DNA from: Syncephalis fuscata S228
Lineage: Eukaryota > Fungi > Zoopagomycota
Reading direction: 5' to 3'
Length of the DNA stretch: 64,000 nucleotides
Assembly: GCA_025786725.1 (NCBI GenBank)
Contig: JAHLTZ010000011.1
Coordinates: 310,001 to 374,000, forward strand
Shown here piece by piece: positions 1 to 53,440 of this stretch (its first letter is position 1; every line of letters begins with the position of its first letter). The notes under the pieces are model-generated. The model was given only the letters and a program-made list of their open reading frames with translations. It was not told the origin of the DNA and made no database searches. The position numbers and the translations under genes are program-made.

Positions 1-2067
1 TTTTTAGCTGTACGGCGTTCCTATTATTATTATTATTAAATTATTATTATTATTAAATTATTATTAATGTCACTTTATTGGTAATTACACTGATTACTTA
101 CTCGTTTAGCTTCTTTGGCTGCTTCTTTACGTAATTTACGTTCTTCTTGTGATTCAGTCTTGGATCGAGCAACTCCCAAATTCACACCTATATAAATATA
201 AATATGTAGTAATCTAGTAAATATAAATCATACCAGTCTTTTCCGCTTTACTTGTTGTTGTCGTCTCATCATTTCCATCTTCTACAACAATTGGCATACC
301 ACTTTTACGACTAAGACGAATACGACGATTAACCTCTTGAATTAATCCAGGATGATTCTCAAGATTAGAATAGGTACCTAAATATTAATGTTAATATTAC
401 TATTAAATATAAGTTATAATTACTTACTTAGAATCGATTCACAATCCCATGCATCTCGTTCCTTCTCTTGTGGATACAACATATCAATACTCTTTGCTGC
501 ATCGATAGTTGAACGATAAGCACGCTCATTTAATTGAGCCGTTGCCTCTTTGATTCTACCCGCATCGGTATCGTCTTCATCAACTAGAAGGGCGTGACGA
601 TAAGCACCGAGTTTCTCACCGGCACTGCCATGCAACATAGGCAACATCTTCTTGCCAATAACCTCGTATTTATCCAAGAAATCATCAAGAATGGCTTCAA
701 AATCTTCACGTTGTTTAATTGATATATGAGTGCGTCTACCAGTTTTAGGATCGATATCTGCATCATCATCATCATCATCGTTCTCTTCATCATCGTCATT
801 TCTTTCATATTCCTCTTGAATCTAATATTATATTATTAATAACTGACTATAGTATAACCAATTAACTTACTCGATCAAATTGTTCATCCAACATTGTCAA
901 TTTCTCATTACGGAACATAGCCGAGGATGACATTGAGAATCCAGTGCCTACTGAACCAGTTTCAAATCGATCACTTTGATTGTCATCTGCTGCTGCTGCC
1001 CTTAATTGCTTAAATCTATTAAATAAAAATGGTTAATATTAATAATAACTAAATACTCTATATCTATATATCTATATATTTATATATTACTTTAAGAAAC
1101 GTCTCTCCCATCCACCTTCATCATCATTTTCATCGTCATCGTAGTCATCTTCATCACTTTCTCCTACTACATCAAAATCAAATGCATCTTCATTCGAATC
1201 AGCATCAGCATCGAGTTGGGCAATAAAATCATCATCAAGTGTATCTTCAGCTTCTTCGTCATCTTCTTCTTCATTATCACTTAATTCAAGTGCTTCAAGC
1301 GCTTCTCTTAATTCTGGATCCATATCTGGCTGTAATCCTATTATTTACACACACACATATATATATTACTATTTAATATATATATATATATACATTTCTA
1401 TTCACTATACCTTGTACTACAGCTGGTTGATTCATTAGACCAATAGGCATTTCATAGACTGATGGCAATACTTCAGCTGGTAATAGTGTTTTTGATGGAT
1501 TCCGTGGTGATTCATCCACAGTTGATACATCATCTTTAATCTATATTAAATTAATATTAAAAAATGTTTATTAACATAGTACACTACTTACCTGGACACT
1601 GCTCTTCTTCTCTTTACGTTCACGAGTGGGTGCTTCTAAAAATATAGCACCTTGATTGCCTATAGGACGTAAATGCTGTGTATAGTCATACTCGGAGTCA
1701 TCAAAAGATACACCGAATAAGGCTGCTTCACCAGTATGGCTGAAATATATATATAACAATTAGGTTGGTCAGTTCAGTTACTCACTAGTGCTACAATGAA
1801 TATAGAATGTACTTACTTCTCTTCATCATCGCTACTACCAATGTCAGACAAGTGATTGGCTTGTCTATTGGCCGCTCCATGTCCCTAGTATATAGTTGGT
1901 TAGTATGAATATACGCCCTATTTCCTCATTCTTGTTCTTACCCGTGTAATTTCCTTGAATACACGGTCTGAGGCTTCTGCATCAGCAATGAGCGGGTCTC
2001 TTTGTGAGCGATGCACAAGATGAAAGTGGCGGGCACTCTTCTTCTCAATAAACTTCTTCTTAACCAT
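1..2067 (-). CDS. LTV1: LTV1 40S ribosome biogenesis factor, multi-exon; 3' end runs off the window
   Basis: Start MVKKKFIEKKSARHFHLVHRSQRDPLIAD; GEAALFGVSFDDSEYDYTQHLRPIG; GLQPDMDPELREALEALE; WDCESILS/TYSNLENHPGLI; GT-AG introns. Confidence 0.93.
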
Positions 2068-5200: not shown

Positions 5201-7046
5201 TTTAATTTGTCTATATATATATTTATACTTACTGTCAAATCCATTAGCCGATGTTTAATTTCCCGTATATTATTAGAGATACCTTCGGCTTTCTCTCGTA
5301 CAGGCTGCATACTAGTTTCATGGGCATTAACTTGTGCAATAAGATCGGTCACCTTAGTTTGGATATCTGCTTTCTGTGCCTATTATTTGTATAAATATAC
5401 CATTCCAATACTAATAACAGCATATCTATTCATCTTACATTCTCGGTAGCTATATTTTCATCAAGTATTGGTGCTCGTTGTTCAGCTTTTGCTACACGTT
5501 TATCAATTTTTTTCAATTCCTATGACTAATAATTAATACGCGTATATTAGCTTTTGTCTAATCTACCTTTTCCAATTCATCAACTTGAGCCCAGGCCATT
5601 TCATTCTTTAAACCATCAAGTCTCTTTTCCAATTCACGTGCTTGCTGCATATCATGTAGACGTAATTCTGCCTCGCGTAGTCCACGACGCATATCTGGCA
5701 GTGCTTGTCGTTTTGGTCCTAACAGTCGCTCAGTATTCTCCAGCGACTCACGAATAAGTGCATATTCTTCACTAAGCTGTGTTAACTGCGTTCCACGAGC
5801 AAAAAACTATACTAAAGGTTATTACTAATATAGAAATCTGCCATGGATAAACCACTACCTCATATTTATCCTCCGGCTTTGAACTACTTAGAAAAGCTTT
5901 AGCTGTATCTTGAGATAGAATATTCATAGGATTATCTACTTGAATGCCCATATGATCGCACATAGCAATTAAGTCTTCACGCTTAGTCGATATAACAGCG
6001 CGCGTCTCTCCATTTCGTAATCGATATTGGCTCGATGCATCACGTATAATACGTCGCTCAACCAATATTTCCGATCCAAATTCACTTTGACGGAATGCAT
6101 CTGCACCACGGTTACGTAATCGAATTATAATCTCTGCAAAACTATATAGTGTATTACATTAAATAATAACATCATTAAATGGCGCAATCTACTTACTTTG
6201 CCCCTTCTCTTATAAGTGATTTCAAGTTACTTGCTCGTTGTGTGACATTGGCTTTTGCACCCAAACAAATAATAATTGCTGTAAGAATGGCACTTTTACC
6301 ACCTTATCTTTGATTACTTATAGTGTCGGAGTACATATATAATCTACTTACTGCCATTATTACCAACGACAAAATTGACATGTGGACCAAATCTCATGGT
6401 AAGTCGTCGATGACACATAAAGTCTATAATATCCACCGATTCAATGACTCCCATTTCTGCAGCCACCGATCTCTATAATATAAATATAATTAATATACTA
6501 TCAATGTCAATACTAGATACACACCATACTATTTTGTGTATTATTAGTCATTGGCGATGACACCATAGACATATCAATTGGACCATTTAATCCCAAAGTA
6601 TCATTATTATTATTATGTTGTTCACTAGTACGCCGATGCTTATTAGTAGGTTGTTGCGTATACTCTTCCTCTCCCTCCTCTTTTTCAAATATCGTATTGC
6701 TATACTGAGAAGAAGTGGCTATTGGTATTGATGGTGTTGCCGTTGTTGTTATTACACTTTTACGTGGCCGTTTACCCGTCTGTTTTGGCTGTATATAATA
6801 ATAATAATAAACTATTTATTCTACCTTATACTATACTGATCAATTAAATACCTTATGGTATTGACTACTTGGACTAGTCTCCTGGCCTGGTTCCAATTTA
6901 ACGTTGGCATTCATTGTTTGACTAGAAGCCAGTGGTGTACGAGATTTAGAGCGACACTTTGCAACGTTGCTACTGGTACTATCAAGTAACGTGCCGTCTT
7001 CTCGATCAGTCGCAGTACAAACGGGACTTTTATCGTTTGTTGCCAT
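2205..7046 (-). CDS. SMC6: Structural maintenance of chromosomes protein 6, many exons
   Basis: Walker A region [33 protein letters not shown]; [19 protein letters not shown]; hinge PIGPLG; signature [18 protein letters not shown] and Walker [14 protein letters not shown]. Confidence 0.93.
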
Positions 7047-7404: not shown

Positions 7405-7968
7405 CTACTTGGGCAGTCGTTCACGATCGAGAAATTCAACTTTTACGGGCATTTTATGGGCCGCTATCCGCACTGCCTCTTTAGCAAGTTCTGGTCGTAG
7501 ATCTTCCGTCCCGCCTAGTTCAAATATAACTCGACCGGGCGGTACACGGCACTCCCAATGATCAAATGCACCTTTACCCTTGCCCATACGCACTTCGTTA
7601 CCTTTACGCGTAACTGGAATATCGGGAAATACGCGCAAGTAAATTTTAGCACCTTTGCATGGCTTAATCTTTCGCTTGACTGAAAGTTGAATTGCCGATA
7701 GTTGTGCGGCTGTTAGACGTGAGCCTGTACAAACACGCATGCCATAACGACCTATTGTAAGGGTTGTGCCGGCCGTACTGCCACCTGTCGGTAGAGATAT
7801 ACGGCCCTTTTGTGCCTTGCGGTATTTCGTTCGGCGCGGTGCTAGATGAGATCGATGTCGACGCGCTATTGATTGCGTAAATACACTTAAAAGAGACGTT
7901 GGTGTTTTACGCGACCATATTGTTGGCTTTATACCATAATGGCTACTCAGCAATAAACCAGTGCTCAT
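7405..7968 (-). CDS. MRPL16: Mitochondrial ribosomal protein uL16m, intronless
   Basis: PRRTKYRKAQKGR, RMGKGKGAFDHW, IFEL motifs; N-terminal presequence-like segment. Confidence 0.95.
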   Translation of the reverse strand: MSTGLLLSSHYGIKPTIWSRKTPTSLLSVFTQSIARRHRSHLAPRRTKYRKAQKGRISLPTGGSTAGTTLTIGRYGMRVCTGSRLTAAQLSAIQLSVKRKIKPCKGAKIYLRVFPDIPVTRKGNEVRMGKGKGAFDHWECRVPPGRVIFELGGTEDLRPELAKEAVRIAAHKMPVKVEFLDRERLPK

Positions 7969-8509: not shown

Positions 8510-10100
8510 TTGGCTCTCACATTTTTTTTATTTATTTCACTCTTCTTTTTTATCACTATTTTATCGTTCTATTCAGTAATATATTATTTGATAATGTCAA
8601 ATATAATAATATAAATGGCATGTGTATTTAAGCATCAATACAGAACATTATTTAATCTCTAGTTTTTATTTCTCTCATTGTCTACCAAACTGTTTGAAAA
8701 GCTATGTTTATTAGTATTGAAAAACTGATGATTACCGCTGATGAGTTTAGACTTGTTGGCAATTGCAAGTTTAAGAGAAAAATATTGATTCAACAAGATT
8801 ACAGTTTATTTGTTCTCATAAAGACCGTTTCAGCAAGTGTCAGTTTGTTTTGGCTGCCAGAAAACAAAAGACTAGTAAAGATTGTCCAATGCAATTTTAA
8901 CCATATTAATGATTGTGCATATGATTGTGGTAATAATACTATTAAATCTATTACTAAATCTATTACATATAATATTACTACATTCTTAAATATAAAACCA
9001 AAAGATGTACAAGTAAAAGTATTAAGTACATATTTAATTATTCAATACACACCAACAATTATAACAGCTCAGCAGATGTTATTATTTCTTATCACAAAAC
9101 TTGATCTGTTTTAGATTTGATAAAAAGACATTGTTACAATATTAGTAATAAAATGATGTATCATTGACCAGGCAACCAAAGGAGGAAAAGAAATAGGAAT
9201 AGTAGCTTAGCCAAATGTTTTAATATCAATTAATAAAGAATAACATCAGTATTAAATGATTTAACCTATAACAATAGCTCAAATTAGCATATTTATAACA
9301 AAAGTCGTAACTGTATAGATTCTGATAGCAAACTAAAATGAATTGGATTATAAAAGTCATTTTTATTATTATTTGAATAACAGTATTGTGTATTTACAAT
9401 ATTACTAAATAATAAAAGTTACAAAGCTAAAAATTTCTGATGGGAAAAAGTTGATTACAATAGTTGCAACAATTTTAATTTAAAATCTTATTCATGTAAT
9501 TAGTTGATTATAGCAATATTAACAGCAATGCCAATCGTGTTTTATTTGCTAAAAAACTTTTAACGATATACTTGTGACAAATGCAACTAAAGAACGCAAT
9601 ACAAGAACACGCTCTGCAAGGATTAATATTAAGGATATTGAACTAGTAGTTAATACTGAAATAAACGTCTTTATTAAATAGATACAAACTAATAATGAAG
9701 CAACTATTAAAATAAATAAAGTGTAATGCAAACAAAAATGATTTAATTAGTAAATATTTTCAAATTTAAATTTAACCACAAATAAAATTAGAATATTTTA
9801 TTCAGAGTGTTTCAGATATCATATTTAGCAATTAAACAATTCTGAATTACACGAAAGTAGTATTGCTTTAATTAACTTGAATTAATTAGCTGATGTATCA
9901 AACAAGAGTGAAGATATGCAAAATAATGCCGTCAACATGGCATTTATCATTGGCAAACTAGAACAATCTACTCGTAACATTCATTTTAAACATCGCAGTA
10001 GTCGCTCCGATGTCATAATTTAGAAAAGCCGTGGAACATGGCGAAAGAAGCTTAAAAGGGTGTTATGACGGATCATTTAAACCACTTGATTTGTATTAAA
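8510..10100 (+). mobile_element. Highly decayed transposon relic, possibly Fanzor-type
   Basis: 8510-8680 is similar to 15670-15840 in direct orientation; broken frames with a Cys-rich start and NMAFIIG(K/N) near 9935 loosely resembling the Fanzor FIIGNW segment; GATCATTTAAAC at ~10071 also occurs at ~16384. Confidence 0.35.
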
Positions 10101-10988
10101 TCTTATGATATTTTAGCAACTAAATAAAATAACTTTTTTTACAATACTAGCATATTATTGATTGTTTAATGTGATTTAACAGTTAAATAACTATAATAGC
10201 CACACATTTAAACGAAATATCCGTGTTATTGAAAATGAAACTGGCTGCTGGGTGTCATTGATTATTAAGCTATTTATTTATCATTATTATTGTACTGTAC
10301 ATATCTATCTTGTATACACATACTATATTTTGTCTATATCATTAATATTGTAGATTGTAGAAACTATATTAACAAAAGCTAAAGTTTATTGCTAACTGTA
10401 TTATTTAGTAGATTTTGATTTATTTTGTTTATTACGCTTGGTTAATTGCATACAGTATAGTTTCACTATCACTATTCACGTACTTGTTTTGTCTATTTAT
10501 TTGGTTTATAATATTGTATACTTTATTGCCCTGTTTTATTAAAAAGTGCCTTTATTCTAATTTCAGCATAATATTATTTGGCTATATGATAATAATAGCT
10601 TTGCTACTATTATATCAATCTATGCTTATAGCTTACATGATATAATTATACACTTTTGTTGATTTAACTATTTGATCAATAATTGCATTATTGGATACAA
10701 ATAGAACATGATTATAGATTAGCATTTGATTGTATATATTTAAGATGAAGCCATAAGTTTATTACTATAAGCATGCACAGTTGAATAGTACAACTAGATG
10801 CAAACATGTTGGTAACATAATGATTCCATTGGTTAAAGACTGGATAAACCGGAGCATTGGCCAAAACTTGATATATAATAGACTGGACGGCGTATTTGTC
10901 AAATTCTTGATTTTCACCAATATATACCTAAATGTATTGGAATAGTGGTTCGATTGCACCACCAATGCTAATGTCTTGAAGCCATCGA

Positions 10989-13844
10989 TTATACTGTATT
11001 TACAAATAAAGATATTATATGCCATAATTAATGTATAAGCCATCAATATACAATAATACTTACTGCCTATTAATATTAAGTTATTGATACACATAATACA
11101 TGGTATATAATTAATTTATAAGCTGTCAATATACAATGCTACTTACGACCTATTAACATTAAGTTATTGATGCACATGGTGCATAACATTTAATTAGTGA
11201 GTAATCAATTAATATACAATACAACTTACATACTATTAGTATTAAGTCATTGATATACATGGTGCATAGTATAAATTAGCGCATATTTAGTTAATGCATA
11301 ATACAACTTACTGTCTATTATATTAAGTTGTTGATGTATACGACATATGATACATAATTAGTGAGTAGTCATTTAATAAAAATACAACATACTAGCTATT
11401 ATATTAAGTTGTTAAAAACAAAATACATAGTATATAATTAGCAAGAAGTTAATCGACACATAATACAACTTACGTCCTATTATATTAAATTATTTATACA
11501 TAAAGTACATGGTATAGAATTAGTGCATATCTAGTTAATACATAATGCTACTTACCGCCTATTAATATTGATTTGTTGATGCACACAATAAATAGCATGT
11601 GATTAGTGCATATTTAATTAACATACGATAAAACTTACAATCTATTAATATTAAATAGTTGGTATCATCAGCAAATAGCATAGTCAATGTATAGTCAGTT
11701 AATATATACTCTCACTTACTATCTATTAATAGTAAATAATTAGTATAATTAGTAAATAACAGGCAATGTATATTCAGTTAATACACAGTATCACTTACTG
11801 ACTATAAATATCAAACAATTGGTATAATCAGTAAATAGCACAGTTAATGTATAGTTAGTTAATGTATAATATTACTTACAGCCTATTAATATTAAACAAT
11901 TGATATAATCAGTAAATAGCATAGTTAATGTATAGTCAGTCAATATATACTTTCACTTACAAACTATTAATGTTAAACAATTGGTACAGTTAGTAAGTAG
12001 CATGATTAATGTATATTCATTTAATATACAATACTACTTACTAGCTATTAATATTAAATAATCAATACAATCATTAAATAACAGTTAATATATATTCGAT
12101 TAATATACAATACAACTTACAATCTATTAATATTAAATAATTGGTATCATCAGTAAATAGCATAGTTAATGTATAGTTAGTTAATATATAATGTCACTTA
12201 CAGGCTATTAATATTAAACAATTGATGCAGTTAGTAAGTAGCAGCTAATATATATATATAGTCAATTAATATACAATATCACTTACCGACTATTAATATT
12301 AAACAATTGATACAATCAATAAGTAGCATAGTTAATGTATAGTTAGTTAATGTACAATATCACTTACAATCTATTAATAGTAAATAATTGGTACAATCAG
12401 TCATTATTATAATTAGTGTATAGTCAGCTAATGTACAATATCACTTACGTTCTATTAATATTAAATAATTGGTACAATCAGTAAATAGCATGGATAATGT
12501 ATAGTCAATTAATATACAACATTACTTACGTTCTATTAATATTAAATAATTGGTACAATCAGTAAATAGCATGGCTAATTTAGTCAATTAATATACAATT
12601 TCACTTACCCTCTATTGATATTAAATAGTCGGCGCAATTAGTAAATGGCATGATTAATGTATAGTTGGTTAATATACAATATTACTTACTCTCTATTAAT
12701 ATTAAACAACCGGTACCAGCAATAAATAACATGTGATTAGTGAGTAATTAATTAATATGCAATACAACTTACGACCTATTAATATTAAGTTGTTGATGCA
12801 CATAATTCACAATATGTAATTAGCTAATAGTCAATTAATGTACAGTATAGCTTACATTCTATTAGTATTGTTATTAATATAGATGGTGCATGGATATAAT
12901 TAGTGAGTAATTAGTTAATATACATACAACTTACTAGCTTTATATTAAATAGTTGATGCACACAGTACACGGTATATAATTAATACATAGTCAATTAATA
13001 TACAATACAACTTACCAACTATTCCATTAAGTTATTGATACACATAGTGCATGATACATAATTAATTTATAAGCCAGCAACATCAAATACCACTTACTGC
13101 CTATTAGTATTAAGTTAATGATATACACAAGCATAATATATATTAGCTAATGCCCAATTATTATACAATATAACTTACATGCTATTAGTATTAAGTTATT
13201 GATATACACAACGCATGGTATAAAATTAGCGCATAGTCAGTTAATATATAATACGACTTACCAGCTATTAATATTAAATTGTTGATATACACAATACATG
13301 GTATATAATTAATTTATAAGTCATTAATATAAAATATCACTTACCGCCTATATAATATTAAGTCATTGATACACACAGTACACGGTATATGATTAATGCA
13401 TAGTCAATTAATATACAATATAACTTACAATCCGCTAATATTAAGTTATTGATGAATACAGTACACGACAAATAATTAGTATGCGTTCTATTGACATGCA
13501 ATACGACTTACGAGCTATTAATATTAAACAATCGATACAATTAGTAAATAGCATAATTAATGTATATTCAACTAATATATATTATCACTTACTGACTATT
13601 AATATTAAATAATTGATACCAGCAGTAAATAGCATAGTTAATGTATAGTCAATTAATATACAATACAACTTACCATCTATTATAATTATGATTTAGAAAT
13701 ACTGTTAGTAAACAAAATGTTATGACATATTTATTAATATTGCAACATACCACGACGAACTAAGGCTGGCTTAGCATCCACAATGGTTGTAGCGGCCACA
13801 AGCGCGACAACAATGGTGCAAACGGCAGCAATGGAAAGCTTCAT
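10989..13844 (-). CDS. Micro-exon gene encoding a 66-aa secreted Cys-rich prepropeptide (35 exons: 94-nt first coding exon, 33 micro-exons, terminal exon)
   Basis: Exon 1 13844-13751 (signal peptide + KPALVRR + G, donor GTATG); 33 AG|exon|GT units from 13676 to 11064; terminal acceptor CAG at 10996-10994, then A|TA TAA. Spliced ORF has no stops and gives C-x2-C-x3-C-x10-C-x3-C-x4-C. Confidence 0.88.
11059..13690. repeat. Tandem array of 33 units, period 79-85 bp (homologous introns, each with a micro-exon)
   Basis: Recurrent plus-strand CTTAC-NNN-CTATTAATATTAA; the central NNN differs between most units. Confidence 0.97.
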
Positions 13845-13979
13845 GGTGATATTGATTTGTTAAGACAAACAAATAAGAGAGATAATAGAGTGTGGTTGGT
13901 GTAAAGTGGAGAGTAGTGTGTTTAGTAAAAAGTAGAGTATGATGATGATATCGTAGTTGGATGTGTATATTTTGTGGGC

Positions 13980-13987
13980 TATTTATA
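13980..13987 (-). promoter_or_regulatory. TATA box (TATAAATA) of the micro-exon gene
   Basis: Canonical TATA ~136 nt upstream of the ATG at 13844, followed by a C/T/A-rich leader. Confidence 0.55.
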
Positions 13988-14189
13988 CTTACAGCTATGC
14001 TGAGATACTGGTATACTACAGTATACGAGATATACCATTGATGTGTAATATGAACCAATAAAGCAATCCAAATAATGGCTTGAGGTGCACATGTACCAAT
14101 AAATTCATGGCGTGACAGCATGCTTTCTAGTCTTGATTTCGACCTGCTCGGCATTTACACAAATGACACGGCAATTTTAATGAGCAGTG

Positions 14190-14592
14190 CATATGCAATA
14201 GAGATAGGCATATCATTCTATATTTTTTTGTTACAAGGTCTAACTATTTGGTAAAAACAAGTATATTGTTTGTTTTGTAAAAACGATAATGATGCCTTTA
14301 CTGTCGCTTCCACCGAATGACTCGGGTCCCAATATTTGCATGCATACAAAATAACACATAACCTGCCCGGTCTTTACTTCAATCTGCTACTCGTTTACAC
14401 GAATAACACAATAATGATCATAATCCAGTACATATGCGATAGATATAGGCATATTATCCTGTATTTTCTATTACACAATCTAACTATTTGGTGAAAACAA
14501 GTATATTGTTTGGTTTTGTAAAAACGATAATGATGTTTTATTGTCACTTCCATCAGATGACTCGGGCCCCAATATCTGCATGCATACAAATA
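14190..14592. repeat. Imperfect direct duplication of ~160 bp (14190-14351 and 14431-14592)
   Basis: TAACTATTTGGT(A/G)AAAACAAGTATATTGTTTG...ATGACTCGGG(T/C)CCCAATAT(T/C)TGCATGCATACAAA occurs twice, ~240 bp apart. Confidence 0.9.
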
Positions 14593-15669
14593 GTGTACAA
14601 TATTGACGCAAAAACAAGTTTAATGTATCAAACTAGTATTTTATACAGGTTTTTACTGCCATACATAAGCCAGCTGTAACTTTTTAAATTATAAAGTGTA
14701 TTGATTGGTACATGTATGCATTTCATTCGACACTATGCCCATTTTTATGGGGCAATCATTGCTTTGAATTCACAAATACAGCACATCAAGACATATTATG
14801 CCACATGCTGTGCAACTGCCATCATTCAAATGACGGCTAATCCAAATTACCTGAAATCGACTATACAATCAGTACTGTTTGTAGCATGATGCATCACAGC
14901 ATTTTGAGCAATAGAACATTCAACAAGTCATTTTCGTCATCAGTTTTCAAATGTAAACCAAATTTCATCGGCTAAATTACACACAATACAATATGCAGAC
15001 ACTAGTTAGACACAATAGAAAGTTCTGCTCAAATATCAGCAATTTCGAGTACATAATGTCAATGGATTGCATATAAACCGGTAATCATCCAAGGTCTAAG
15101 TGCTGCTTACATTTCTGAAACCAATCCCGACAAGTTAAACAAAATGGAATATAGAAGAACAAGTCAGAGCAGAAACCAATAGAAAAACTATTAGCAGCTT
15201 AAATGCTTACTGGTTTAATCTATAGCAAATCATTATAGCTATGCTAAGCTGAACTACATTTATCAAAAGTGGTTGTTACGGATGCGATTAGAACAGCAAC
15301 AATGTTAAACCGAGATAACTCACAGAAAACAGAGAGATGTAAATAAAATTGAATTAAGTTTAGTAGTCAAATAACTTATTATTGTCACTATACTTTATAA
15401 TTCTGGTTGTTTGTGCGGATAAATATTTACAATCACATTGTAACATCTTATATACTCACATTTACACGACCACCAACTAAGCCAACTATTATAAAGCTTA
15501 ATCTAATTATTTATCAGAGTAAACAGCTGATATTATACATTATTGCAATGATAGAAAAACAGATTAATTTCATTTATTGCTCATTAATAAAAGCTGTATA
15601 GCTACATATTAAAATAAAACAAAATATTGGATTGAGCGCATAATATTTATATGGTCATGTCATTTTTAC

Positions 15670-16400
15670 CTTGACTCCACATTTTTTATTCATTCATTTC
15701 ACTGATTTTTCTATTGCCATTTTATTTTTCTATTCAGTATTATATTATCCGATAATGCTGAATATAACAATATAAATAGCATGCGTATTTGAACAGCAAT
15801 AAAAAACACTATTTAATCCCTAGGCTTTATTTCTCTTATTTACATAACACCTGTTCAAGTAACCTCAACAACATGGCGTATATTCTGGTTACAACTGTCG
15901 CCACAAGATCTTTCTGGTGAAGACACTCAGTTTACCATTATTGCTATGATGAAGATCATTTGCTTTATCAATGATTGGCAAATAAACTGCGCCTACCAAG
16001 TTGATAGCAAGAATGCTCAAGAGAATGGTGAACATCAAAAATGCTAATCGTTCTTGCGAATATGCCCAAATGCAACATTAGAAAATTGGAAAATAAAAGA
16101 GCCCATTCAGACGCAACAATCCATGCTGTACATAGATGCAACAGTAACAAATGCGAAACGATATGGGATCGCGATCAATGGTTTCTATTAATATTTTATC
16201 AATTTTTCTACACATGGCCAACAATAATAATTGGCCTCAAATGATCCAAAGAAATCAAATACTATGTTACATTATTTACTTAAATGCTTAAAATAGCAGC
16301 TATCGATACAATGTTCTGTTACATTTAATTCTATTTTATGAAAATGATAATGTTATTATATTACATTAATGCTTATTGTAAATGATCATTTAAACACAAA
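15670..16400 (+). mobile_element. Internally deleted Fanzor/TnpB-like element relic (zinc finger plus RuvC-III end)
   Basis: Broken frames APTKLIARMLKRMV; PKCNIRKLENK...IHAVHRCNSNKCETIWDRD; after a shift MVSINILSIFLHMANNNNWP, matching the Fanzor W-N-R-D-x-M-A-S-x-N-I C-terminus. Confidence 0.65.
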
Positions 16401-17038: not shown

Positions 17039-19236
17039 TTACGTTGATAAAACAGATACTTCTGCAGATACTGCTGGTAATTCGCCCTGTATACGTTTGT
17101 TAGAGTGTGGACAGCGTAGAACCAGTTGCGTGGCGCCGCTTTCGCGTATAGTAACATCGAGGTAGACACGTTGGTTCTCATCGGTTGGTAATCCAAGATC
17201 GGCCAGTGTAAGTTGGGCAATAGCTCGGGTCTCGCCTGTGTTAGAGCGTTCATATAAGCGAACACGGCAATGTTCGGCACTTCGTTCGATCAAACGATGG
17301 CGTTTAACGGGTAGTGGTGTACCTGCTGGAATAATTGTTTCGAATCGATCGGCTGCATCAATAATACCAATTGCCTGTGAAAGATGTGGTACAGTGCTGG
17401 TTCCAGGTAGACACGCATAGCTGAACGGACAGCTGCATCAACTGTAGCGTTGACAGGTGTTGCTGTACCACTTGGTGCAGCACTAGGAGCAGCACTCGTC
17501 GCTGGCGTCTCTTCAGTACGTTTAGGCGTTGGTGCATTGGATGATTTAGGACCTTTACCGCCCTTGCCGCCCTTACCACTTTTACCTTTACCGCCCTTCT
17601 TGTTGCTACGTGACGGAGCAGGAGAGGCAGGTACCGGTGTAGAGGTGCCGCTTGCTTGTTGGCTTGTAGCCGGCGTTTCTTCTCTAGCTACAGCTGATTT
17701 ATCAGCTGGTAGAATCATTGATGCACATGCTGATGTATTGGCCAGTAGTGCGGCTTGAATAGCACAGCCAAGAGCGGCAGCTTCATCGGGTTCAACCTCG
17801 GTACGAATAATAACCTGGTCATTGGTTTTGTCTTGCTCTTCACTCGTAGCTGCAAACAGCTTGTTTAGCTGCGTGTGCAGTAATGGTAAGCGGGATGCAC
17901 CACCTAATAAAAGTATTTCATGCGGCTTTTGTGTGCCGTTGGCACCGTCCTTTGACCAGCCCACCAATGCAAGCACTTCGTTAACAATATCCATACAGCG
18001 TTGGACTAGTGGTGCAACTGCAGAATCGAATACAGCACGATGTACGTTAATATTAAGATCAATACCATCGGCAATTGACTCGACGGAGCAAGGTGCACTT
18101 GGACGCATACCAAGCGAACGGCGTGTTGCTTCACAGGCCAGTACAAGTTTGGCCACCGATCGTGGTCGATCGCTTAGATCAATGCGGTGACGACGTGTAA
18201 ATTCACGCTGTAAATGAGCAGCTAATGCACAATCAAGTGCACGTCCACCAAGACCAGTTTCGTTACGGGACACTAGGCGGGAGTAAAGACCGCCACGTAC
18301 ACCATAAGCATGAACACGTAGTGCAGTGCCGCCCAAATCTATTATTATACGATTGATGTCTGTAGATGCAGCCGTTGGCCGATTGACCGATGCATCAAAT
18401 GCTAATTGGGCTGCAGCAGGTTCACTAACAACTTGGTAGACAGCAAGACCGGCAAGCTGTGCCGCTTTACAAAGGCCGGCTCGCTGAGTTGGCGAAAAAT
18501 GAGCTGGATACGCAAGAACAGCACCGCTCACCGACTGACCAAGAGCAGATTCGGCACTTGAGCGCAATTGACGCAATACAATAGCCGTTACTTGTTCTGG
18601 AGAGTAATAGGTCGGTCCAGCTGCTTCTATTGGCTCACCATCATCATCCCATTGCTCTTCAGCAGGCACTTCAAATTTCAATTGGCCATCTTCTTCGGTT
18701 AGTGCAACTCGATTGCCATGGCCACGAAAAGCATCCACTGCCGGGTCTTCTATGCTATAATTATTTATATATTAGCACCACTATTCATGGGTGTAAATCA
18801 CACTGTTGACACCTACCTGGTACAGCCAAGAAGCTCATTAAAAGCAAGCGTGACACGATTTGGCTGGCGTACACTTAATTGTCTAGCCTGCACGCCAACC
18901 AACTAAATAAACATAAATGCAAAAATAAAAATAACATAACACAATATATAAGTGTCATTGCATTATCAATATATATTTGTCATTTACCTCCTCTGTACCA
19001 GAGAATGCCACATAGGCTGGCACCATGCGATCACCATCTTCATTGGCTACCAGCTGTGGCCGACCATCCTATTTGAACATAGTAAATATACTGTTCTATA
19101 GTTATTGTATATATAGATTGTATCTTACCTTATCAAGCACAGCGACTGAGGCGCGTAGCGTGCCCAAGTGAATACCAACGACATTAGTGCTTCCATCTAC
19201 GCCATTCGCGTTATTTAAAGTTGAAGTGTCAGCCAT
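17039..19236 (-). CDS. SSZ1: Atypical Hsp70 of the ribosome-associated complex (Ssz1/HSPA14-like), apparent frameshift near 17400-17440
   Basis: VVGIHLGT, ANEDGDRMVPAYVAF, VSEPAAAQLAF, IIIDLGG, LLLGGASRLP, EPDEAAALGCAIQA; C-terminal TVPHLSQAIGI...TIIPAGTPLP lies in a shifted frame. Confidence 0.8.
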
Positions 19237-31659: not shown

Positions 31660-33135
31660 CTATCTACGACGACGATCGTGATATCTATCATTATCGTCGT
31701 GTTCTCTTCGGTTTCGATGTCGATTAGACGATGGACTACGTTCACGACTATTACGACGACGAGCATGATGTTGATGATGACGCGGTTCATGTTCATAAGA
31801 CCGTGGCCGTTGATAATGATGACTTGACTCCGATCGGCCAAAATGATGATGATCTCTTTTATCTTTTGACTTTTGTAGTTGATGTTGTTGATCGCGGTCA
31901 TTCGACGTCACTTTATGTTCATTATCTTCTCTTGGTGTTGCCTTAACTGTTCTACCATCGGCATGCTCAAATACCATTTCGTATTGATCGGCATCTTGTC
32001 GACCTTGTCGTTTCATAGCCAATCCTTTTCCGACATCGTCACCGGCGGCTCGTGCTCGACGTGCATTGGTCCAATCGCCGTGTAGTTTACTTACAGATTG
32101 TGAAAAGTCCACTTTAATACGTCGATCATCCACGAGTACATTATCCATTTTAAAATACGCTTCTTCAGCGTGTTCACGCTCTTCAAATTCCACAAATGCA
32201 TAGCATAGCGATTCATTAGTGCGACGGTCACGAATGACTTCACACGATGATATGGCGCCGAATCGAGAAAATATTAATTCTAAATCTTCATCTTGCGTAA
32301 CTGGATTCAATTTACATATAAATAGTACGTTTTCCGGCGGCTTAATATCGGCAAATGGCAAATCACCGACCATTTCAAGGGTAAGTGCGCGGGCCTGTGC
32401 TTCACGTTGTCGTTGACGTGCTAATAACTCCTCTGGTCCCATACCTTCAGGATCATCAATCGATTCATCTTCGCCGAGTCTAACTGTAGCCAGTTGTTCG
32501 GCAGTTGGCATAGGCGATGCATCTGGTACACTAAGACCATGAGGATCGGGAAATGGATCATCCAGTATAATGGTATGTCTAATACGAATATCTCGAAACG
32601 GCTGATGATTATCGTCGCACTGAGCGTCATTAATAAGATCGAGTACTTCAAAGCCTTCAACGATATGACCAAATACTGTGTAGCGGCCATCAAGATAGTC
32701 AAGTTCATCGCCCAGTGTAATAAAGAACTGTGAGCCACTAAGTGCTAATGAAGTGCTTGTATCGCTAGTTTTATCGGCTGTTGTTGTTGCCGTCGTATTA
32801 GTTGAATTATGTTCAGTGGCTACAACAGCCATAGAGACAGTGCCTCGCTTTTTATGTTTAAGTTTTGGATGTATCTCGGCTGGAAAGTAGCGCTTTGCTG
32901 CTCGTTCCTCTGCTGACAGTCCTTCTAATAGACTGAATACGCTTTCACCGCCCTTGCCACTTCCTGTAGGATCGCCAGTTTGAGCGGCAAAATCCTTTTC
33001 AACGCGAAACATTGAACAAAAGTTGTAGTATTTAATCTTGCATAGTTTTAAAAAGTTAAGGCAAGTACGTGGACAACGATCTACTTCGAGATCTATAACC
33101 AAATCGCCTAAAGATGTTTCAAGTAGAACGCTCAT
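31660..33135 (-). CDS. PPIL4: Cyclophilin-RRM peptidyl-prolyl isomerase (PPIL4/Rct1 type)
   Basis: [34 protein letters not shown]; [17 protein letters not shown]...YAFVEFE; RS/H-rich tail. Confidence 0.95.
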
Positions 33136-33349
33136 AATGGAATAAAGACAAATACAGAATAATAATAATAATAACAATTGTAATTGATGTTTACAACGCG
33201 TATTAATTGGTTTATTTTTCTTTTCTATTTCAACTTTCTAAGCCACTTTCTTATTGTTGTTTATTAGTGACACTATTCACTATAAACGATATTGATACTG
33301 GTTTAGTGCACTTCAGAACAAAAGGTTTCTGTTTATTTACTTATTCAGT

Positions 33350-35404: not shown

Positions 35405-38187
35405 TCAAGTTTCCGTATCGCTATGTTGTCGTTTACGTGATCTATTTGATTTAGATGCACCATGGATATTCCGAGAAGAAAAGCGCTTTTTACGTCCAGC
35501 AAGTAATGCTTCACATTCTTGCCAGGCATAATAAAGAATTGCATTTAATTGGAGGATATCCTGTTTACGTCGATGATCTTCACCAAGTCGACGGAATTCA
35601 TGGGTGAGTTGTGCACATCGACTTACATTCTCTGGTGATACAAAATCCATGGCCACTTTAATACAAGAAGCGTAATTACATACTTGATGTGCACAGCCAG
35701 CTGGCACAAATACTGCATCACCGGGATTTTGAAATATACGCCAGCCTTTAACGCCGTATTCCTGATACAGACGTTGGCGTAAGCCACGATCAAGATAGAA
35801 TGTTTGGTCGTGTACTGGATCATCAACTGATATATTGCGTTCACGGGCAATATGAGTTAAAAAGTCACGTATTTTTGGTAGATCAGCCAGTGGAAATATA
35901 TCCCATACGGCAGCAGCGGCAATGCCTGGTGGCCGTTCTGTAAACGCTAAACTATCATGACAAATAGGATATCTGGCACGGTTTTCTTCCGGTGATGGTC
36001 GATGATGCTGTCCATTGGATGATGATGCTGTTGGTGGTGCAGTATGTTGGTTAGTTGAGTTCATTTTCTTTTGAATAAGCTGTTCTTGCTGCTCGATCGG
36101 TAGGTTATCAAGATAGGATGCATAAAGCATAATATTAACAGCATCAGCCATGTCAAGATGTAGATTTGTGGTACCGGCACCACCTTCGCCATCATTTGAT
36201 CCATAAGCATTATACATCTTTGGCCCTAGATCGGGCCAGATATAATGATTTGATAAACGATTGACTAGATTTAGATCGCCTTGTAGATGTGTATATGGCT
36301 TAAATGGTAAAACACGCATAAAATCGTGATAATGGTCAGGGAATTTGTTGCGGAAATCGTCGTTTGACGGCCAATCCTACAATAAATACACTTTATTAAT
36401 GTTACTTGTTATATAATTATGCAATACGTACCTTTAATTTAAGAATCATACAACGACTATTCTCGTCACTAGGCCGTACTGTAATATCGGAGAAGCCTTG
36501 AAAGAATTGACCAACCGTCATGTCGACAAGTGCATCACCTGTACGACAATCGATCATTTCTGTAACTTCATGACCGTGATATTCAATAAACCAACTCGGT
36601 GTCCATAATGAACATGTAAATTGCGATAATAGATTTGGTACAAAACATGCTTCACCTCGCGCCCAACAGGCTTGGAACTGATCAAGTTGATCATTTAATG
36701 GAGTAACATTCAATATCTGATAGCGTCGAAAGTGGGCAACCGAGTCAAATGCCGCATCGTCCGTGGGCAGTGGTGGCTTAGGTAGTTGCGGGAATTGCCA
36801 GGCCATAATTGTTTCCTTCATCCAGCGAAGTTCGGCTAGGCCATAATTACGCATTCTTACCATATGCTGATGGCCATGACGTCTGCTATAAGTGCACCGT
36901 TTGATACGGCAGCATCTGGACTTGCATCCCATTCATCGTAGCAATCCATACAAATCTCAAGACCACAAACACCACACATCCAGAATCCACTTAGAATGTT
37001 GGTCAAGCAAGCATCGCATAGTTGGCGCTGTAAGCCTAGTGGTTCACGTCGGTAGCATGGTTCATGTTCGGCAAACGATAGTTCACGATCGACAATATAT
37101 CTTACAGCAGAAATAATTCGATGCAGTATGAATCGTTCTGGTGAACCAAAATGATAATGAATTTGCGGATCTGTTTCTTCAACAGCGGTACTAGTGGTAG
37201 TAACAACACTAATAATTGATTTTAATAGATCTTGTCTTGTCCAATCAATAATACGCCCTTCAGACGACTCTTCAACCGCCGATTGAAAGAATGGACCATA
37301 AATAAGATCGTCGCTTGTAATATCACTTCGTTTTTTGCCTACTGCGTCAAGTTTTAGACCAAATACACGTGTACGAGCAAATCTACATGAGCCAGCATTT
37401 CTAGATACGCACGCTACGCATCGTTCAAATCGACTAACTACTGGGCGCTGGCATTGTGAAGTTTGCCAAAATACTGGACCATGACATGTACGCATTTTCA
37501 CCTTTGATAGATCGTCATGCACCCAAGTACGTTCTGGTGCTGGTTTTGTTACACGAGACTGGCGCGATGTTCGACGTGCTTTGCCATAATTACCGTCATG
37601 TGCTTCATCATCGTCTGCGCCGTCGTTATCCTCATCATCGCTCCTTTTACCATTGTTTAAATCAACATAGGATCTAATTTTGGTGGCAGCTCGTTGAGGA
37701 CGACGATAGGGCCGAGTTTCATTAGGTACGATGGATTCTTGTTTAACAAGTGGCTTTCGAGCAAGACGAAGGCGCAAGTACGCATCGACTACTGCCTCGG
37801 AAAGGCCCGTCATATTTGCACAAAACTTTAGCTCTTCTGGAGTAGCAGGTCGTGCATGAGCCTCAAGTTTTTGATCCAAAATATAGGCCGATTCTGGTGG
37901 AATCATAGCTAACGAGAATGACTCGTTTGTACCTTTATATTATACTTTTAATTAATAAACAATAACTAAGGAGTATGTATAGATTTACCTGATATGTTAC
38001 CATTGCTATTTACTGTCGACCTCTGGTCACTTTCTTCGCTATCGCTATCGCTATAAGAGCTGCCATTGGTTTTAGGTGAATTAGACGCGAATTCCGACGT
38101 TAATACTTTGTAATGAACCGACTTTACACCGTCTAGTCGGCTAGTTGTCGTCTTTTGGGCCAAAGATGGCGATTTTGCTTGTAGCAT
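35405..38187 (-). CDS. JmjC histone demethylase, KDM3/JHDM2 family, with zinc finger
   Basis: CDACLTNILSGFWMCGVCGLEICMDC; LKLK|DWP; PDLGPKMYNAYG; TTNLHLDMADAVNI; GDAVFVPAGCAHQV. Confidence 0.92.
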
Positions 38188-40918: not shown

Positions 40919-41941
40919 TTAGACAATTATTGGTTTATTTGGCAGGAGTGGATGGCGTTGTTGATGCAATATTTGTAAACGAGTCTGCCCATACGCTTTC
41001 CGATTCCAAGTGTATGGTTCATCGGCAAATGCTTTGGATAATACGTTCAATACGGCATTGCCAGCTTCCAATTCTAATTCAGACAACTTTGCTTTTGGCA
41101 AAGAAGCGTTTGTTTGACGCTGGAATACAACAATCATTGCCGCTGCAGCTCTAATGCTAGGCAGGTTCGATTCAAGTGGTGTGGCACAGCGTGCCAAATG
41201 GAAAAGCATGAAATTCTCCATTTCTAACGATACAGCATTAGGATATTGCGCGTGGATCTGTTCAACATGCTCGTCATTCCGGTCAACAAATGCTGGATCC
41301 ACGCGGCCTTGTGCGGCATAGAATGTATCTGCCGTAATATTCGTGCCAGATACCACATGATTTAAACCTACTTGCTGGCTCAGTTGCTGTTTTAATGCTT
41401 CAGTAAGTTGAGTATCGGCAGCAAATACACTTGAAAAAGTGTAACATTCCTTTGGCTCGCTGCTGCTTAAGCTAGAAACGGCAGACTTTGTTGTGGTGTC
41501 TGTGCCACTATCGATGGCCAAATCTGCAAAGGCGTCGAATCGTCGTGTTACCGCTGCCGAATCATCAGGCACAATAATATCGCCAGCATCAGCAATGGGC
41601 GCAATAGCACCACAAGTACCAATGCGAATAACACACAATGGGCCATCGACAACAGCACGTACCTCACGAAGCATGAAATCCATCATTGCCATTCCCATAC
41701 CAATAGCTATAATACTAACTGGGTGTCCGGCAAATCGACCGGTAATTGTAAGAAAGCCGCGGTGACTTTCGCGTTCAAACTTTGGTGCATCAGCATCAAG
41801 AAGGGTAGCAAGACGTCGTGCACGTTCTGGATCGCCCACTGTAAGGATGCGATTACACACCTCGCCTCGTTTTAAGCCTACGTGATAAGTATGGCCCTCA
41901 GCATCCATAGGAAAGTTGGCGTTTTTCATATCAGAATGCAT
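40919..41941 (-). CDS. Uridine/purine nucleoside phosphorylase (PNP_UDP_1 family)
   Basis: ILTVGDPERARR, HRGFLTITG, GMGMAMMDF, IRIGTCG, ADTFYAAQGR, LEMENF. Confidence 0.92.
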   Translation of the reverse strand: MHSDMKNANFPMDAEGHTYHVGLKRGEVCNRILTVGDPERARRLATLLDADAPKFERESHRGFLTITGRFAGHPVSIIAIGMGMAMMDFMLREVRAVVDGPLCVIRIGTCGAIAPIADAGDIIVPDDSAAVTRRFDAFADLAIDSGTDTTTKSAVSSLSSSEPKECYTFSSVFAADTQLTEALKQQLSQQVGLNHVVSGTNITADTFYAAQGRVDPAFVDRNDEHVEQIHAQYPNAVSLEMENFMLFHLARCATPLESNLPSIRAAAAMIVVFQRQTNASLPKAKLSELELEAGNAVLNVLSKAFADEPYTWNRKAYGQTRLQILHQQRHPLLPNKPIIV

Positions 41942-51599: not shown

Positions 51600-53440
51600 T
51601 GCTTTATTTCTGTTCAGTACTGTTGTTCTAGTTGTATCAAAATTGCTTGAATTTTTACTAAACTTGATCTAACAGCATGATCTTAATGACTTGCTTTTCG
51701 TTTATTAGCTCAATGGTAAGACTAGATCAATCAATATTTAGATAGTCAATTGCTTTCATTGACCTATGTTTTAGTCGGTTGTTCTGCAAACAGTCTCGCT
51801 TGGTTTTTTGTCAAAGCCGCTTTTAGAAACATAGGCTATCAGCTAAACCTCAAGTGATTACTGCTTGGTGTGTGTTCTGTTGCTACTACGCATCCAAGTT
51901 TGACTTTATTTGAATAAAGCTGCCTGGCGTGCATATCCTATTAGCCACAAATTGTATTACATGTAATCTGATGAATACAAGCTATTTCTCAGTCAAACAT
52001 TCGATGGTACGAATAATTAAATGTAATAGTTTACTCTTAAGAATGCTGTGATGCATTCTACTACAACAGTTTCTATTGTATAGACAATTCTCAGTCAATC
52101 TTGTTTAGTTGTCATCTCAAATACCGAAAGTTATACAGTGTGTGGTATCGATGCGCTTAGGAATAATTTCTTTGTAAATTTAATGCACTGCTTATTCTTG
52201 TAAAATTTCCATAATGTCGAGTTGAATACACGCATGCACCAGTCAGCATATTTTGTAACTAAACGAAACTCGACTAATTTATGTATAACAGTAAATAACA
52301 GTATAAATACTAATCTGATGTATTAAACTTGTTATTGCGTGTTTTTTGCATGCTACTCGGTATGCATGCAGATATTGGGAACTGCACGAGTCAGTAAAAG
52401 CAACAACAAAAGATAACAGCATTGCTTTTACAGAGCTAATCAATTTTCCCATTCTCACCATATAGCCAAATTGCACAATAAAAATACAGGTTAATATACA
52501 CATATCTATCGCATATTTACTGAATCAAGTTGGGTGGGTCATTATTATTGCCGCACCATCCGCGTAAATGCTGTGCTATATAACGTGCATACCAATAAAC
52601 TAATATTAATAAAATGCGAGTGAGAATTTATATTAACTAGCTATAAACTAATTGCATCCCATATATTTTATGTATGAACAAATAAATGTAATATCAGTAA
52701 ATGACAGTTTATATGCAATAACTATACACTAATTACATGCTATGGTCTGCGGGTGTCAGCCACATAATACTAGTTGTTAAGTACTATTATACATTAATTA
52801 GTTATTTAATAATGGCGCCCATTTACTTTATATTAATAGCATAACATTAATAGAAAGTAAGCGACATTGTGTAATATTGATTATTCATTAATGAAATGCT
52901 ATTTAATTCATATATCAATAGCTTAATATTAACAGGATGTAAGTTGCATTGTAGTTAATTAGCTATGCGCTAATTACATGTTATGTACTGTGTCTATCAA
53001 CAACCTAATATTAATGGGTTGTAAGCTATATTTTAGATTATCAGTTTATGCATTAATTATATGCCATGTAATATATTTATTTATAAATATAAAATAGTCG
53101 GCGTTTTAAGACACTAGCATTATTGATAGCACAATTTAAGATTATTCCAGTACACTTTAGTATATATTCGGTGGAGGCAAGAACATTTGATAAATATGCC
53201 GTTCAGTCCATTCATATATCAAGTCATGGCTAATGCATCGGTTTATCCAGTGTTTAATCAATGGAATCATTATTTTATCAACAGGTTTGCATCTAGTTGT
53301 CTCTATTCAACTGTGCAAACTAGTAGTAATAAAATTATGCTTTCATTATAGCTATATTCAATCGAATTTTATATTTATAATCATGGCTTATTTGCATTTA
53401 GTAATTAGCAAATATTAGTCAAATGGCTGAATTAATAACA
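51600..53440 (+). pseudogene. Decayed, internally deleted paralogue of the micro-exon locus (inverted relative to it)
   Basis: 52040-52520 matches the reverse complement of ~14425-14910; 53100-53440 matches the reverse complement of ~10660-10990; residual units TAG|AAA|GTAAG (52854-56), CAG|GAT|GTAAG (52936-38), TGG|GTT|GTAAG (53018-20). Confidence 0.8.

Follow-up and report, generated by a model that had tools for sequence, protein, structure and literature searches.

Micro-exon genes (MEGs) were reportedly described in schistosomes by DeMarco et al. in 2010, and single exons of 3 nucleotides (nt) are rare curiosities. In schistosome MEGs, the exons measure 6-81 bp (mostly 15 bp), there are 10-20 of them per gene, and the introns extend over 100-5000 bp (PMC10526429). 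The bicycle genes of aphids have ~17 exons on average, unusually small yet longer than 3 nt and in phase 2 (PMC9168663). As for filamentous fungi, a 2024 article states that functional micro-exons had not previously been described in them (PMC11121469). The gene analyzed here is located on the minus strand of Syncephalis fuscata contig JAHLTZ010000011.1 (assembly GCA_025786725.1), in a 64-kb stretch of DNA (positions 310,001 to 374,000 of the contig; hereafter, the window, in whose coordinates all positions are given unless a locus is named), and consists of exon 1, 33 micro-exons and a last exon. Its array of micro-exons very probably forms the central part of an intact gene that encodes a small secreted peptide, spliced with full inclusion of the micro-exons and belonging to a family that evolves by turnover of repeat units.

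The window gene shares several traits with both systems. As in schistosome MEGs, a normal-sized signal-peptide exon is followed by symmetric (3n) micro-exons that encode most of a small, predicted secreted protein; in both cases, the products evolve fast, in-frame skipping is possible by design, and annotation pipelines miss the genes. The traits in common with aphid bicycle genes are: (i) secreted, fast-evolving, cysteine (Cys)-containing products, regarded as candidate effectors; (ii) many micro-exons, nearly all in one phase; and (iii) a gene structure more conserved than the sequence.

Splice architecture and predicted product

On the minus strand, the junction AG-NNN-GTAAGT recurs 32 times, plus one 6-nt version, from 13676 down to 11064, at a spacing of 77-85 nt (mostly 81). 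Tandem Repeats Finder reports the same interval, 11064-13676, as an 81-nt tandem repeat, each unit of which is a short intron plus three free bases (...TTAATATTAATAG-NNN-GTAAGT...). A 22-nt junction motif with 3 free positions has 25 matches in the window versus 0.01 expected: 24 are found in the array and 1 in a decayed copy at 52.9 kb. The parts of the gene, with its untranslated regions (UTRs), are the following:

13845-13987, minus strand: promoter-proximal region and 5' UTR with a TATAAATAG box at 13987-13979; aligned with 10 paralogues and kept there
13751-13844, minus strand: exon 1, 94 nt; ATG, hydrophobic signal peptide, pro-piece ending in Arg-Arg, first base of the next codon
13677-13750, minus strand: intron 1, 74 nt, GTATGT...TACTAAC...TAG; a distant relative within the array intron family
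11064-13676, minus strand: array of 33 micro-exons and 32 introns (76-82 nt, one sequence family), encoding the 35-residue, six-Cys mature part
Micro-exons 1-17, minus strand, first bases: 13676, 13595, 13514, 13434, 13347, 13264, 13181, 13100, 13018, 12937, 12858, 12775, 12692, 12611, 12532, 12451, 12370
Micro-exons 18-33, minus strand, first bases: 12289, 12204, 12123, 12044, 11963, 11882, 11801, 11722, 11641, 11558, 11476, 11395, 11314, 11232, 11149, 11066
13429-13434, minus strand: the sole 6-nt micro-exon; a 6-nt exon is found at the homologous position, directly before the first Cys codon, in paralogues L121 and L125
12449-12532, minus strand: recent single-unit tandem duplication (AAC-AAC), with the same trimer in two adjoining units and preceding introns 91% identical
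10994-11063, minus strand: last intron, 70 nt, GTAAGT...ACAG; homology to the array introns in its 5' half
10989-10993, minus strand: start of the last exon, with 2 nt finishing the last codon and then a TAA stop, whose position is the same in paralogues L121, L125 and L129
10600-10988, minus strand: 3' UTR and flank; AATAAA at 10763-10758; first 300 nt 92% identical to L121, with 1-2-nt indels

The ATG of exon 1 stands in a good context, whose motif occurs only once in the window, and a GTATGT donor is present at the end of the exon. With its length of 3n+1 nt, exon 1 puts the whole set of 34 introns in phase 1, and the codons are split 1+2. This is the pattern that an earlier note on this DNA had described (phase 1 introns throughout, micro-exons in multiples of 3, split codons), and the counts bear it out: 32 micro-exons of 3 nt and 1 of 6 nt, 34 of 34 introns in phase 1, and 34 of 35 mature codons split by an intron. 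Apart from its last 2 nt, the mature part lies entirely in micro-exons. Given phase 1 introns and 3n exons, the arithmetic of the same note also holds, in that any exon skip and any gain or loss of a unit stays in frame and creates hybrid codons. Its remark that no exon ends in AG is true in the window but does not stand as a constraint, because the absence has a chance probability of 0.27 and AAG exons occur in paralogues. One of them (L121 10250-10252) is used as a 3-nt exon in a public gene model.

The donors of the window gene are 31 GTAAGT, 2 GTATGT and 1 GTAAGC, and its acceptors are 32 TAG, 1 AAG and 1 CAG; the 34 introns measure 70-82 nt, with a mode of 78. When the 32 array introns are aligned, the exon positions turn out to be the most variable columns of the 81-nt repeat (pairwise identities of 0.24, 0.31 and 0.23); the intron columns have a mean identity of 0.73 (minimum 0.30), with nearly invariant splice signals. 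The GC content is 42% in the micro-exons versus 23% in the introns. Read in order, the trimers give a stop-free frame with 6 Cys, for which shuffling of the exon order yields P(>=6 Cys)=0.0013 and P(no stop)=0.10. At sequence level, the micro-exon reading can be regarded as established.

The conceptual product is a precursor of 66 amino acids (aa), whose mature part of 35 aa contains six Cys in the pattern C-x2-C-x3-C-x10-C-x3-C-x4-C. The product of exon 1 begins with M-K and has a hydrophobic core of ~20 residues and a small-residue cleavage context, where a signal peptide was called by eye. Arg-Arg, encoded by the two final codons of exon 1 both in the window gene and in most of its paralogues, is a predicted dibasic (Kex2-type) processing site directly before the mature peptide. 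A host-interaction role would be plausible for a Cys-rich peptide that a mycoparasite is predicted to secrete. No public protein model appears to exist for the window gene: homology searches returned no protein from its own locus.

Reading of open reading frames (ORFs) and Pfam matches in the array and its flanks found nothing. Some other candidates were rejected: (i) a 76-codon open frame in the 3' UTR (10992-10768, minus strand) is spurious, as it has no Pfam match and is broken by indels in paralogues; (ii) a second micro-exon pair at 40462/40539 (plus strand) is a chance match without repeat; and (iii) intronic small RNAs were discarded because the array introns match no Rfam family (the only hit is a sub-threshold let-7 match, E=0.13) and the eight introns folded do so no better than shuffles (z +0.5 to +1.8, that is, worse than shuffled).

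Paralogues, unit turnover and related arrays

The exon-1 reading frame (13737-13859, minus strand) matches a 60-aa hypothetical protein of S. fuscata. With this frame, a phmmer search of 1.84 billion representatives retrieved 8 small proteins carrying the same signal/pro exon, all from S. fuscata and all encoded in the assembly that contains the window. Exon 1 of the window gene has 66-84% aa identity to the same exon in the proteins P0121-P0129, and is conserved in 12 paralogues. At least 12 members of the family are present in S. fuscata, comprising at least 7 array genes, 4 intron-free genes and 1 decayed copy:

Array genes, number of micro-exons: window gene 33; L121 35; L125 28; L126 ~38; L127, L128 and L129 ~28 each (automated, approximate exon parses for L125-L129)
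Intron-free genes: L122 157-366; L123 4752-4961; L123 6001-6234; L124 6001-6261
Decayed paralogue, 52574-53460, plus strand: ~6 array units, last intron and conserved 3' UTR; no exon 1

All the arrays of the family are in phase 1 and share one common intron family. Both the window gene and L121 are contained, together with their flanks, in a segmental duplication that extends over at least 7 kb at 75-82% identity (window 9347-16282 versus L121 7301-14623, on different contigs). That L121 might be an orthologue from another species was ruled out, as it belongs to the same assembly as the window and is hence a paralogue within this segmental duplication. The array gene L128 is found on the same contig as the window, ~10 kb before its start.

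The intron-free genes share their 5' UTR, signal exon and 3' UTR with the array genes, and their collinearity with the predicted spliced messenger RNAs (mRNAs) validates the splice model. Between the predicted spliced mRNA of L121 (35 micro-exons) and the intron-free gene L123:4752-4961, which is contiguous, identity reaches 75%, in an alignment that includes a 66-nt ungapped block and a 20-nt near-identical run crossing 7 predicted junctions. Their products share the motifs KDPAK and NYPYPS and the framework C-x2-C-x3-C...C-x3-C-x3-C. The same kind of match is observed between L128 (array) and L124 (intron-free). In the closest intron-free copy, the mature part is similar in length to the full-inclusion product (39 versus 37 residues), and both are collinear. 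The public model P0121, which corresponds to locus L121, uses two 3-nt exons before it runs into a retained intron.

In the tree of the flanks, L124 (intron-free) is sister to L128 (array) with a support of 100/100, and the remaining three intron-free genes belong to the clade that contains the window gene, L121, L125 and L126 (100/99). The grouping of all intron-free genes in one clade is rejected (approximately unbiased test, p=2.4e-8), and two or three state changes are needed. The one-step loss of all introns by recombination with complementary DNA (cDNA) is a known process in fungi. Since the arrays share one intron family and phase, and cDNA loss takes a single step, the intron-free genes would be the derived ones. 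The most parsimonious view is that they are cDNA-mediated intron-loss copies, i.e., fossils of fully and correctly spliced mRNAs.

Intron-free paralogues were also employed for database searches: Pfam searches at E up to 10 gave sub-threshold noise only, and a PDB sequence search with one of them found no relatives. The AlphaFold model of an intron-free paralogue was weak, with a predicted local distance difference test (pLDDT) score of 60.

In the decayed paralogue, only 52854-52856 and 52936-52938 retain both the AG acceptor and the GT donor; in the other units, either the acceptor (TGG for TAG at ~53016) or the donor is mutated. This copy is a natural control, in which the splice signals of a dead gene erode.

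The earlier note had also suggested that unequal crossover or gene conversion between the homologous introns changes the units of the array. Comparative support for this idea comes from unit duplications, mosaic introns and differing unit numbers and trimers. Neither the number of units (33, 35 and ~28-38 micro-exons) nor the trimers (largely different) are fixed among paralogues. The order of intron sub-types is BB-A9-H-B13-H-A6 in the window gene and BB-H-A9-H-B12-AABBAABBA in L121, so that the two arrays are several whole-unit indels apart. Further unit duplications are found in L126 (ACG-ACG, GGA-GGA, GCT-GCT) and in L125, where a 4-unit block makes the string C-E-R-C-V-E-R-C. The duplicated segment consists of half an intron, a trimer and another half intron, as expected if exchange occurs inside introns. 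L126 holds crossover-type mosaic introns, and the introns of L126 and L129 are strongly homogenized internally. Strong concerted evolution between the arrays of the window gene and L121 was rejected, because identities within and between genes are similar and 36 of 66 introns have their nearest neighbour in their own gene.

As the earlier note had proposed, the divergence of the trimers was compared with that of the flanking introns. Between the window gene and L121, 14 position-matched introns differ at 19.7% of sites and the 13 following micro-exons at 50% (Fisher p=1.8e-5); identity is ~87% in exon 1, 83% in the upstream region and 92% in the 3' UTR. For 94 micro-exon pairs with at most 4 mismatches in 60 flanking positions (30+30 nt), the flanks differ by 5.0% and the trimers by 62%, i.e., the trimers are ~12-fold more different than their near-identical flanks, the pairs in these pairwise micro-exon and intron statistics being non-independent. 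There are 189 intron pairs with at least 90% identity, for which trimer identity is 0.32-0.34, and three intron pairs of L126 are 100% identical over 78 nt with trimers that differ on both sides. Tandem duplication followed by point mutation was ruled out as a full explanation, given these 100%-identical introns with unrelated trimers. Short exchange tracts may end at the trimers, where a run of three mismatches would halt heteroduplex extension or where tracts altering the peptide would be selected against; alternatively, the introns may be copied through an RNA-level route delimited by the splice sites.

According to the Nei-Gojobori method, nonsynonymous (dN) and synonymous (dS) divergence amount to 0.35-0.89 and 0.46-1.24, respectively, in the mature part, and to 0.05-0.16 and 0.13-0.43 in the signal exon. 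In the mature part, both are also raised between two intron-free paralogues, which are equally hypervariable, and hence hypervariability belongs to the family and not to the array.

Several observations concern other parts of these genes. The 3' UTR is the best conserved part of the family (L121 13006-13400; L122 367-720; L123 4962-5220 and 6235-6490), and it has no Rfam match. In the window, the frame-breaking 1-2-nt indels relative to L121 indicate that 10600-10988 is non-coding. In some units of the paralogues, the donor is of the GC type (GCGAGT, GCAAGT) or weak (GTAGGT, GTGGGT, GTAAAT): one such case lies at L121 10908-10916, and several are found in L125, L126 and L128. Keeping the GC-donor unit of L121 restores the C-x2-C-x3-C spacing, so it probably contains a functional GC-AG intron. 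A repeat of ~400-500 nt, absent from the window, is inserted in array introns of L125 (6761-7240), L126 (~6190-7010, 7520-7870, 9110-9560) and L127 (7250-7570), always ~20 nt after the donor and with a ~15-nt target duplicated in L125; it resembles a transposon that inserts preferentially into this intron family. In the mature parts of the window gene, L121, L125, L122 and L123:4752-4961 (intron-free genes included), the residue pairs before the second and third Cys co-vary: E-R/E-R, K-E/N-E, D-K/D-K, N-Q/S-Q and A-A/A-K. This co-variation fits exchange between units four apart, and it could also be a helix-face constraint.

The neighbours of the window gene with long uninterrupted ORFs, all on the minus strand, are a mitochondrial-type ribosomal protein L16, an Hsp70-like protein, a cyclophilin-RRM protein (PPIL4-like), a JmjC protein and a nucleoside phosphorylase. 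The PPIL4-like gene points to Zoopagomycota, the group to which Syncephalis belongs. As these are ordinary housekeeping genes with unbroken ORFs, the extreme intron density is confined to the micro-exon family. The neighbouring ORFs are located at:

7405-7968, minus strand: neighbouring ORF
17290-18738, minus strand: neighbouring ORF
31660-33177, minus strand: neighbouring ORF
35405-36319, minus strand: neighbouring ORF
40919-41941, minus strand: neighbouring ORF

Similar arrays were found in metagenomes by scanning for three ATAG-NNN-GTAAGT junctions 60-85 nt apart, a pattern that at least 120 contigs match. Among the matches listed, there are at least 41 runs of at least 8 units with variable trimers, mostly in phase 0; in all 41 runs the flanks are more conserved than the trimer (median 0.64 versus 0.36), frame 0 is open in 40 of 41, and 2 of 508 trimers are stop codons, versus 20.7 expected (Poisson 2.4e-7). 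Two contigs, L019 (1454-3088, minus strand) and L030 (2799-3737, plus strand), have a first exon that encodes a signal peptide and whose last residue is basic (-E-A-R and -E-K-R, respectively), followed by phase-0 one-codon exons. In view of these phase-0 arrays, the architecture in general assigns one codon to each unit, and Syncephalis, with its split codons, represents a special case. None of the 120 metagenome loci listed contains close relatives of the window introns, and a search with exon 1 of L030, aimed at its taxon, returned the same metagenome protein only. Further stop-free phase-0 arrays are present in contigs L029, L067, L086 and L108, and the GC content of contigs ranges from 16 to 49%. 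There are also constant-trimer arrays: GGA repeated 33-50 times (L002, L022, L045), CCT repeated 6-10 times (L007, L035, L052, L079) and TAA (L046, L088, L089). These could be plain satellites with splice-like junctions; if spliced, GGA and CCT would give poly-Gly and poly-Pro.

Proposed working of the gene and rival explanations

If the gene is intact and fully spliced, exon 1 would supply the signal peptide and a pro-piece with a dibasic (Kex2-type) end, and each of the 33 micro-exons would contribute the equivalent of one codon. Recognition would presumably be by intron definition, given that the introns are uniformly short (~78 nt) and have strong consensus signals, namely perfect GTAAGT donors and a conserved branch/acceptor module (TTAATATTAATAG). 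Two spliceosomes cannot sit 3 nt apart, and hence the introns would be removed one after another, with all exons normally included. Constitutive inclusion is what the near-perfect consensus sites and the collinear intron-free paralogues point to. The comparisons show that the arrays gain and lose whole 81-nt units via exchange within introns; the introns remain alike (up to 100% identical), and the trimers between them different. Across the family, the signal exon and UTRs are conserved, the mature part is hypervariable, and intron-free members occur in two separate clades next to array genes.

Several points weigh against this interpretation: (i) the fold and function of the peptide can be approached, at best, through intron-free paralogues that have no Pfam or PDB relatives and a pLDDT of 60; (ii) the transcript-like evidence consists of public models of paralogues, which end in a retained intron; (iii) the automated parser missed exons of 9 and 33 nt in L128; (iv) the direction from array to intron-free gene would follow from parsimony and is not a demonstration; (v) the raised dS of the mature part may reflect misaligned or non-orthologous units; and (vi) the coexistence of identical introns and different trimers may be due to short exchange tracts that stop at the trimers or to RNA-level copying bounded by splice sites.

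The best-placed alternative takes the array to be a device for adaptive diversification, similar to what has been suggested for schistosome MEGs, in which regulated or stochastic exon skipping would produce in-frame isoforms, and crossover and conversion in the introns would be selected. The logic of this idea, put forward in the earlier note, holds, in that every skip stays in frame, and its DNA-level predictions agree with the data: unit number and trimers vary among paralogues with visible unit duplications, and variability is much higher in the trimers than in their flanks. The hypervariable mature region, like that of toxin and effector families, and the weaker donors of some paralogues (GTAGGT, GTGGGT, GTAAAT, GC-AG) also speak in its favor. 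Nevertheless, a dedicated device goes beyond the evidence and is considered unlikely. Actually, 31 of 34 perfect GTAAGT donors and 32 of 34 TAG acceptors are the signature of constitutive splicing, and the closest intron-free paralogue is not shortened relative to the full-inclusion product. The public partial models of paralogues display intron retention, not skipping, and skipping would usually delete or shift a Cys of the conserved framework. Besides, intron-free paralogues are equally divergent in the mature part, and hence the array is not needed for diversification, and the predominance of phase 0 in the metagenomic arrays listed indicates that split codons are not essential to the architecture. 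The safer statement is that the in-frame design makes a unit change or a splicing slip tolerable, at the cost of one residue and never of a frameshift.

A broader and quite unlikely proposal is that one-codon exon arrays are a widespread and so far unrecognized class of secreted-peptide genes in microbial eukaryotes, the introns of which would spread or be homogenized, exactly between splice sites, through an RNA-level route: either reverse splicing or an exchange among RNAs that are partly spliced, and then reverse transcription. The same reverse transcription would write the intron-free paralogues, and array and reverse transcriptase together would act as a generator of peptide variants.

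It has also been considered, as a very improbable scenario, that the intron-free genes are ancestral and that a mobile intron (introner-like, or moved by reverse splicing, reverse transcription and recombination) invaded nearly every codon. Such insertion without exon duplication would give identical or near-identical introns between unrelated trimers, as observed; the coding sequence of the array genes is homologous to that of the intron-free genes, and the exons of 6, 9 and 33 nt could be sites not yet invaded. In contrast, this scenario demands more than 30 insertions at an exact 3-nt spacing, in one phase, in the mature part only and in at least 2 clades, versus a single cDNA event per loss. 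Moreover, trimers were clearly co-duplicated with their half-introns; the intron family is not found in other genes of the 64-kb window, where 20 of 20 matches to the intron 5' core fall inside the array; and the introns lack a stable fold, unlike described introner-like elements.

Finally, a non-coding 81-nt satellite or a dead gene (exon 1 being read into a retained intron, or the repeat hosting intronic small RNAs) can be dismissed as barely credible, even though Tandem Repeats Finder sees a plain tandem repeat, public paralogue models end in retained introns and a decayed copy lies in the same window, since the joined trimers reproduce a contiguous coding sequence found elsewhere in the genome, the Cys framework is kept in phase 1 across paralogues, splice signals are intact in 34 of 34 window introns but disrupted in the decayed copy, hypervariability within the repeat is limited to the trimer columns, and the introns match nothing in Rfam and fold worse than shuffles.

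Significance and comparison with known systems

Runs of 33-38 consecutive one-codon exons would set the spliceosome a limit beyond current models of exon and intron definition, and offer a natural substrate for the study of sequential splicing. Standard annotation can overlook an entire family of secreted peptides, which here numbers at least 12 genes in the genome of one mycoparasite; the paralogues of the window gene were modeled as truncated read-throughs. The intron-free paralogues are a rare internal control for a computational splice model and a clean example of wholesale intron loss, and the identical introns beside unrelated codons pose a testable question on intron homogenization or movement. 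The metagenome scan suggests that the architecture is common in uncultured eukaryotes; if so, fungal and protist proteomes would be missing small secreted peptides, the class most relevant to host interaction, antimicrobial activity and signaling.

With regard to known peptides, the signal peptide, pro-piece and dibasic site before the mature peptide that characterize fungal Kex2-processed secreted precursors are also present in the window gene. Both these precursors and the conotoxin/defensin-type superfamilies share with it a conserved signal/pro region, a dibasic site, a conserved Cys framework and hypervariable inter-Cys residues, with both dN and dS raised in the mature part. In the Pfam and PDB searches with intron-free paralogues, no similarity to known Cys-rich families (defensins, knottins, hairpinins) was found. 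To our knowledge, in none of the conotoxin/defensin-type or Kex2 peptide families does each codon of the mature peptide have an exon of its own.

The introners described so far are scattered across unrelated genes, and those of fungi have predicted stable folds. The introns of the window gene resemble them in that many near-identical spliceosomal introns occur in one genome, with identical copies beside unrelated exon sequence, but here the copies are arranged in tandem at 3-nt spacing within one gene family, with none found in other genes of the 64-kb window, and fold no better than shuffles. In recursive splicing, ratchet points (e.g., in Drosophila Ubx and long introns) leave 0 nt, and one very long intron is removed piecewise. 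The window gene also places a 3' splice site beside a strong GTAAGT donor, so that neighbouring reactions would be sequential and the exon end regenerated at each step. On the other hand, AG and GT are separated by 3 or 6 nt in every case, so that each step would add 3 coding nt (once 6), and the introns have a minimal size. The likeness is mechanistic only.

As regards the two systems introduced at the outset, schistosome MEGs belong to a flatworm lineage, have long and mutually unrelated introns, and have documented splice-variant proteins, whereas the window gene is fungal, has no sequence similarity to them, and contains mutually homologous introns of 70-82 nt arranged head-to-tail. Aphid bicycle genes, in turn, belong to an animal lineage and differ in phase (2 versus 1 here) and in that their introns are not tandem copies; their CYC motifs (paired Cys-Tyr-Cys) are absent from the conceptual product of the window gene. 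Full-text literature searches returned no description of tandem arrays of 3-nt exons. None of the compared systems combines long runs of 3-nt exons with tandem, homologous, minimal introns, and the window gene is the most extreme micro-exon gene among those found described in the literature searched.

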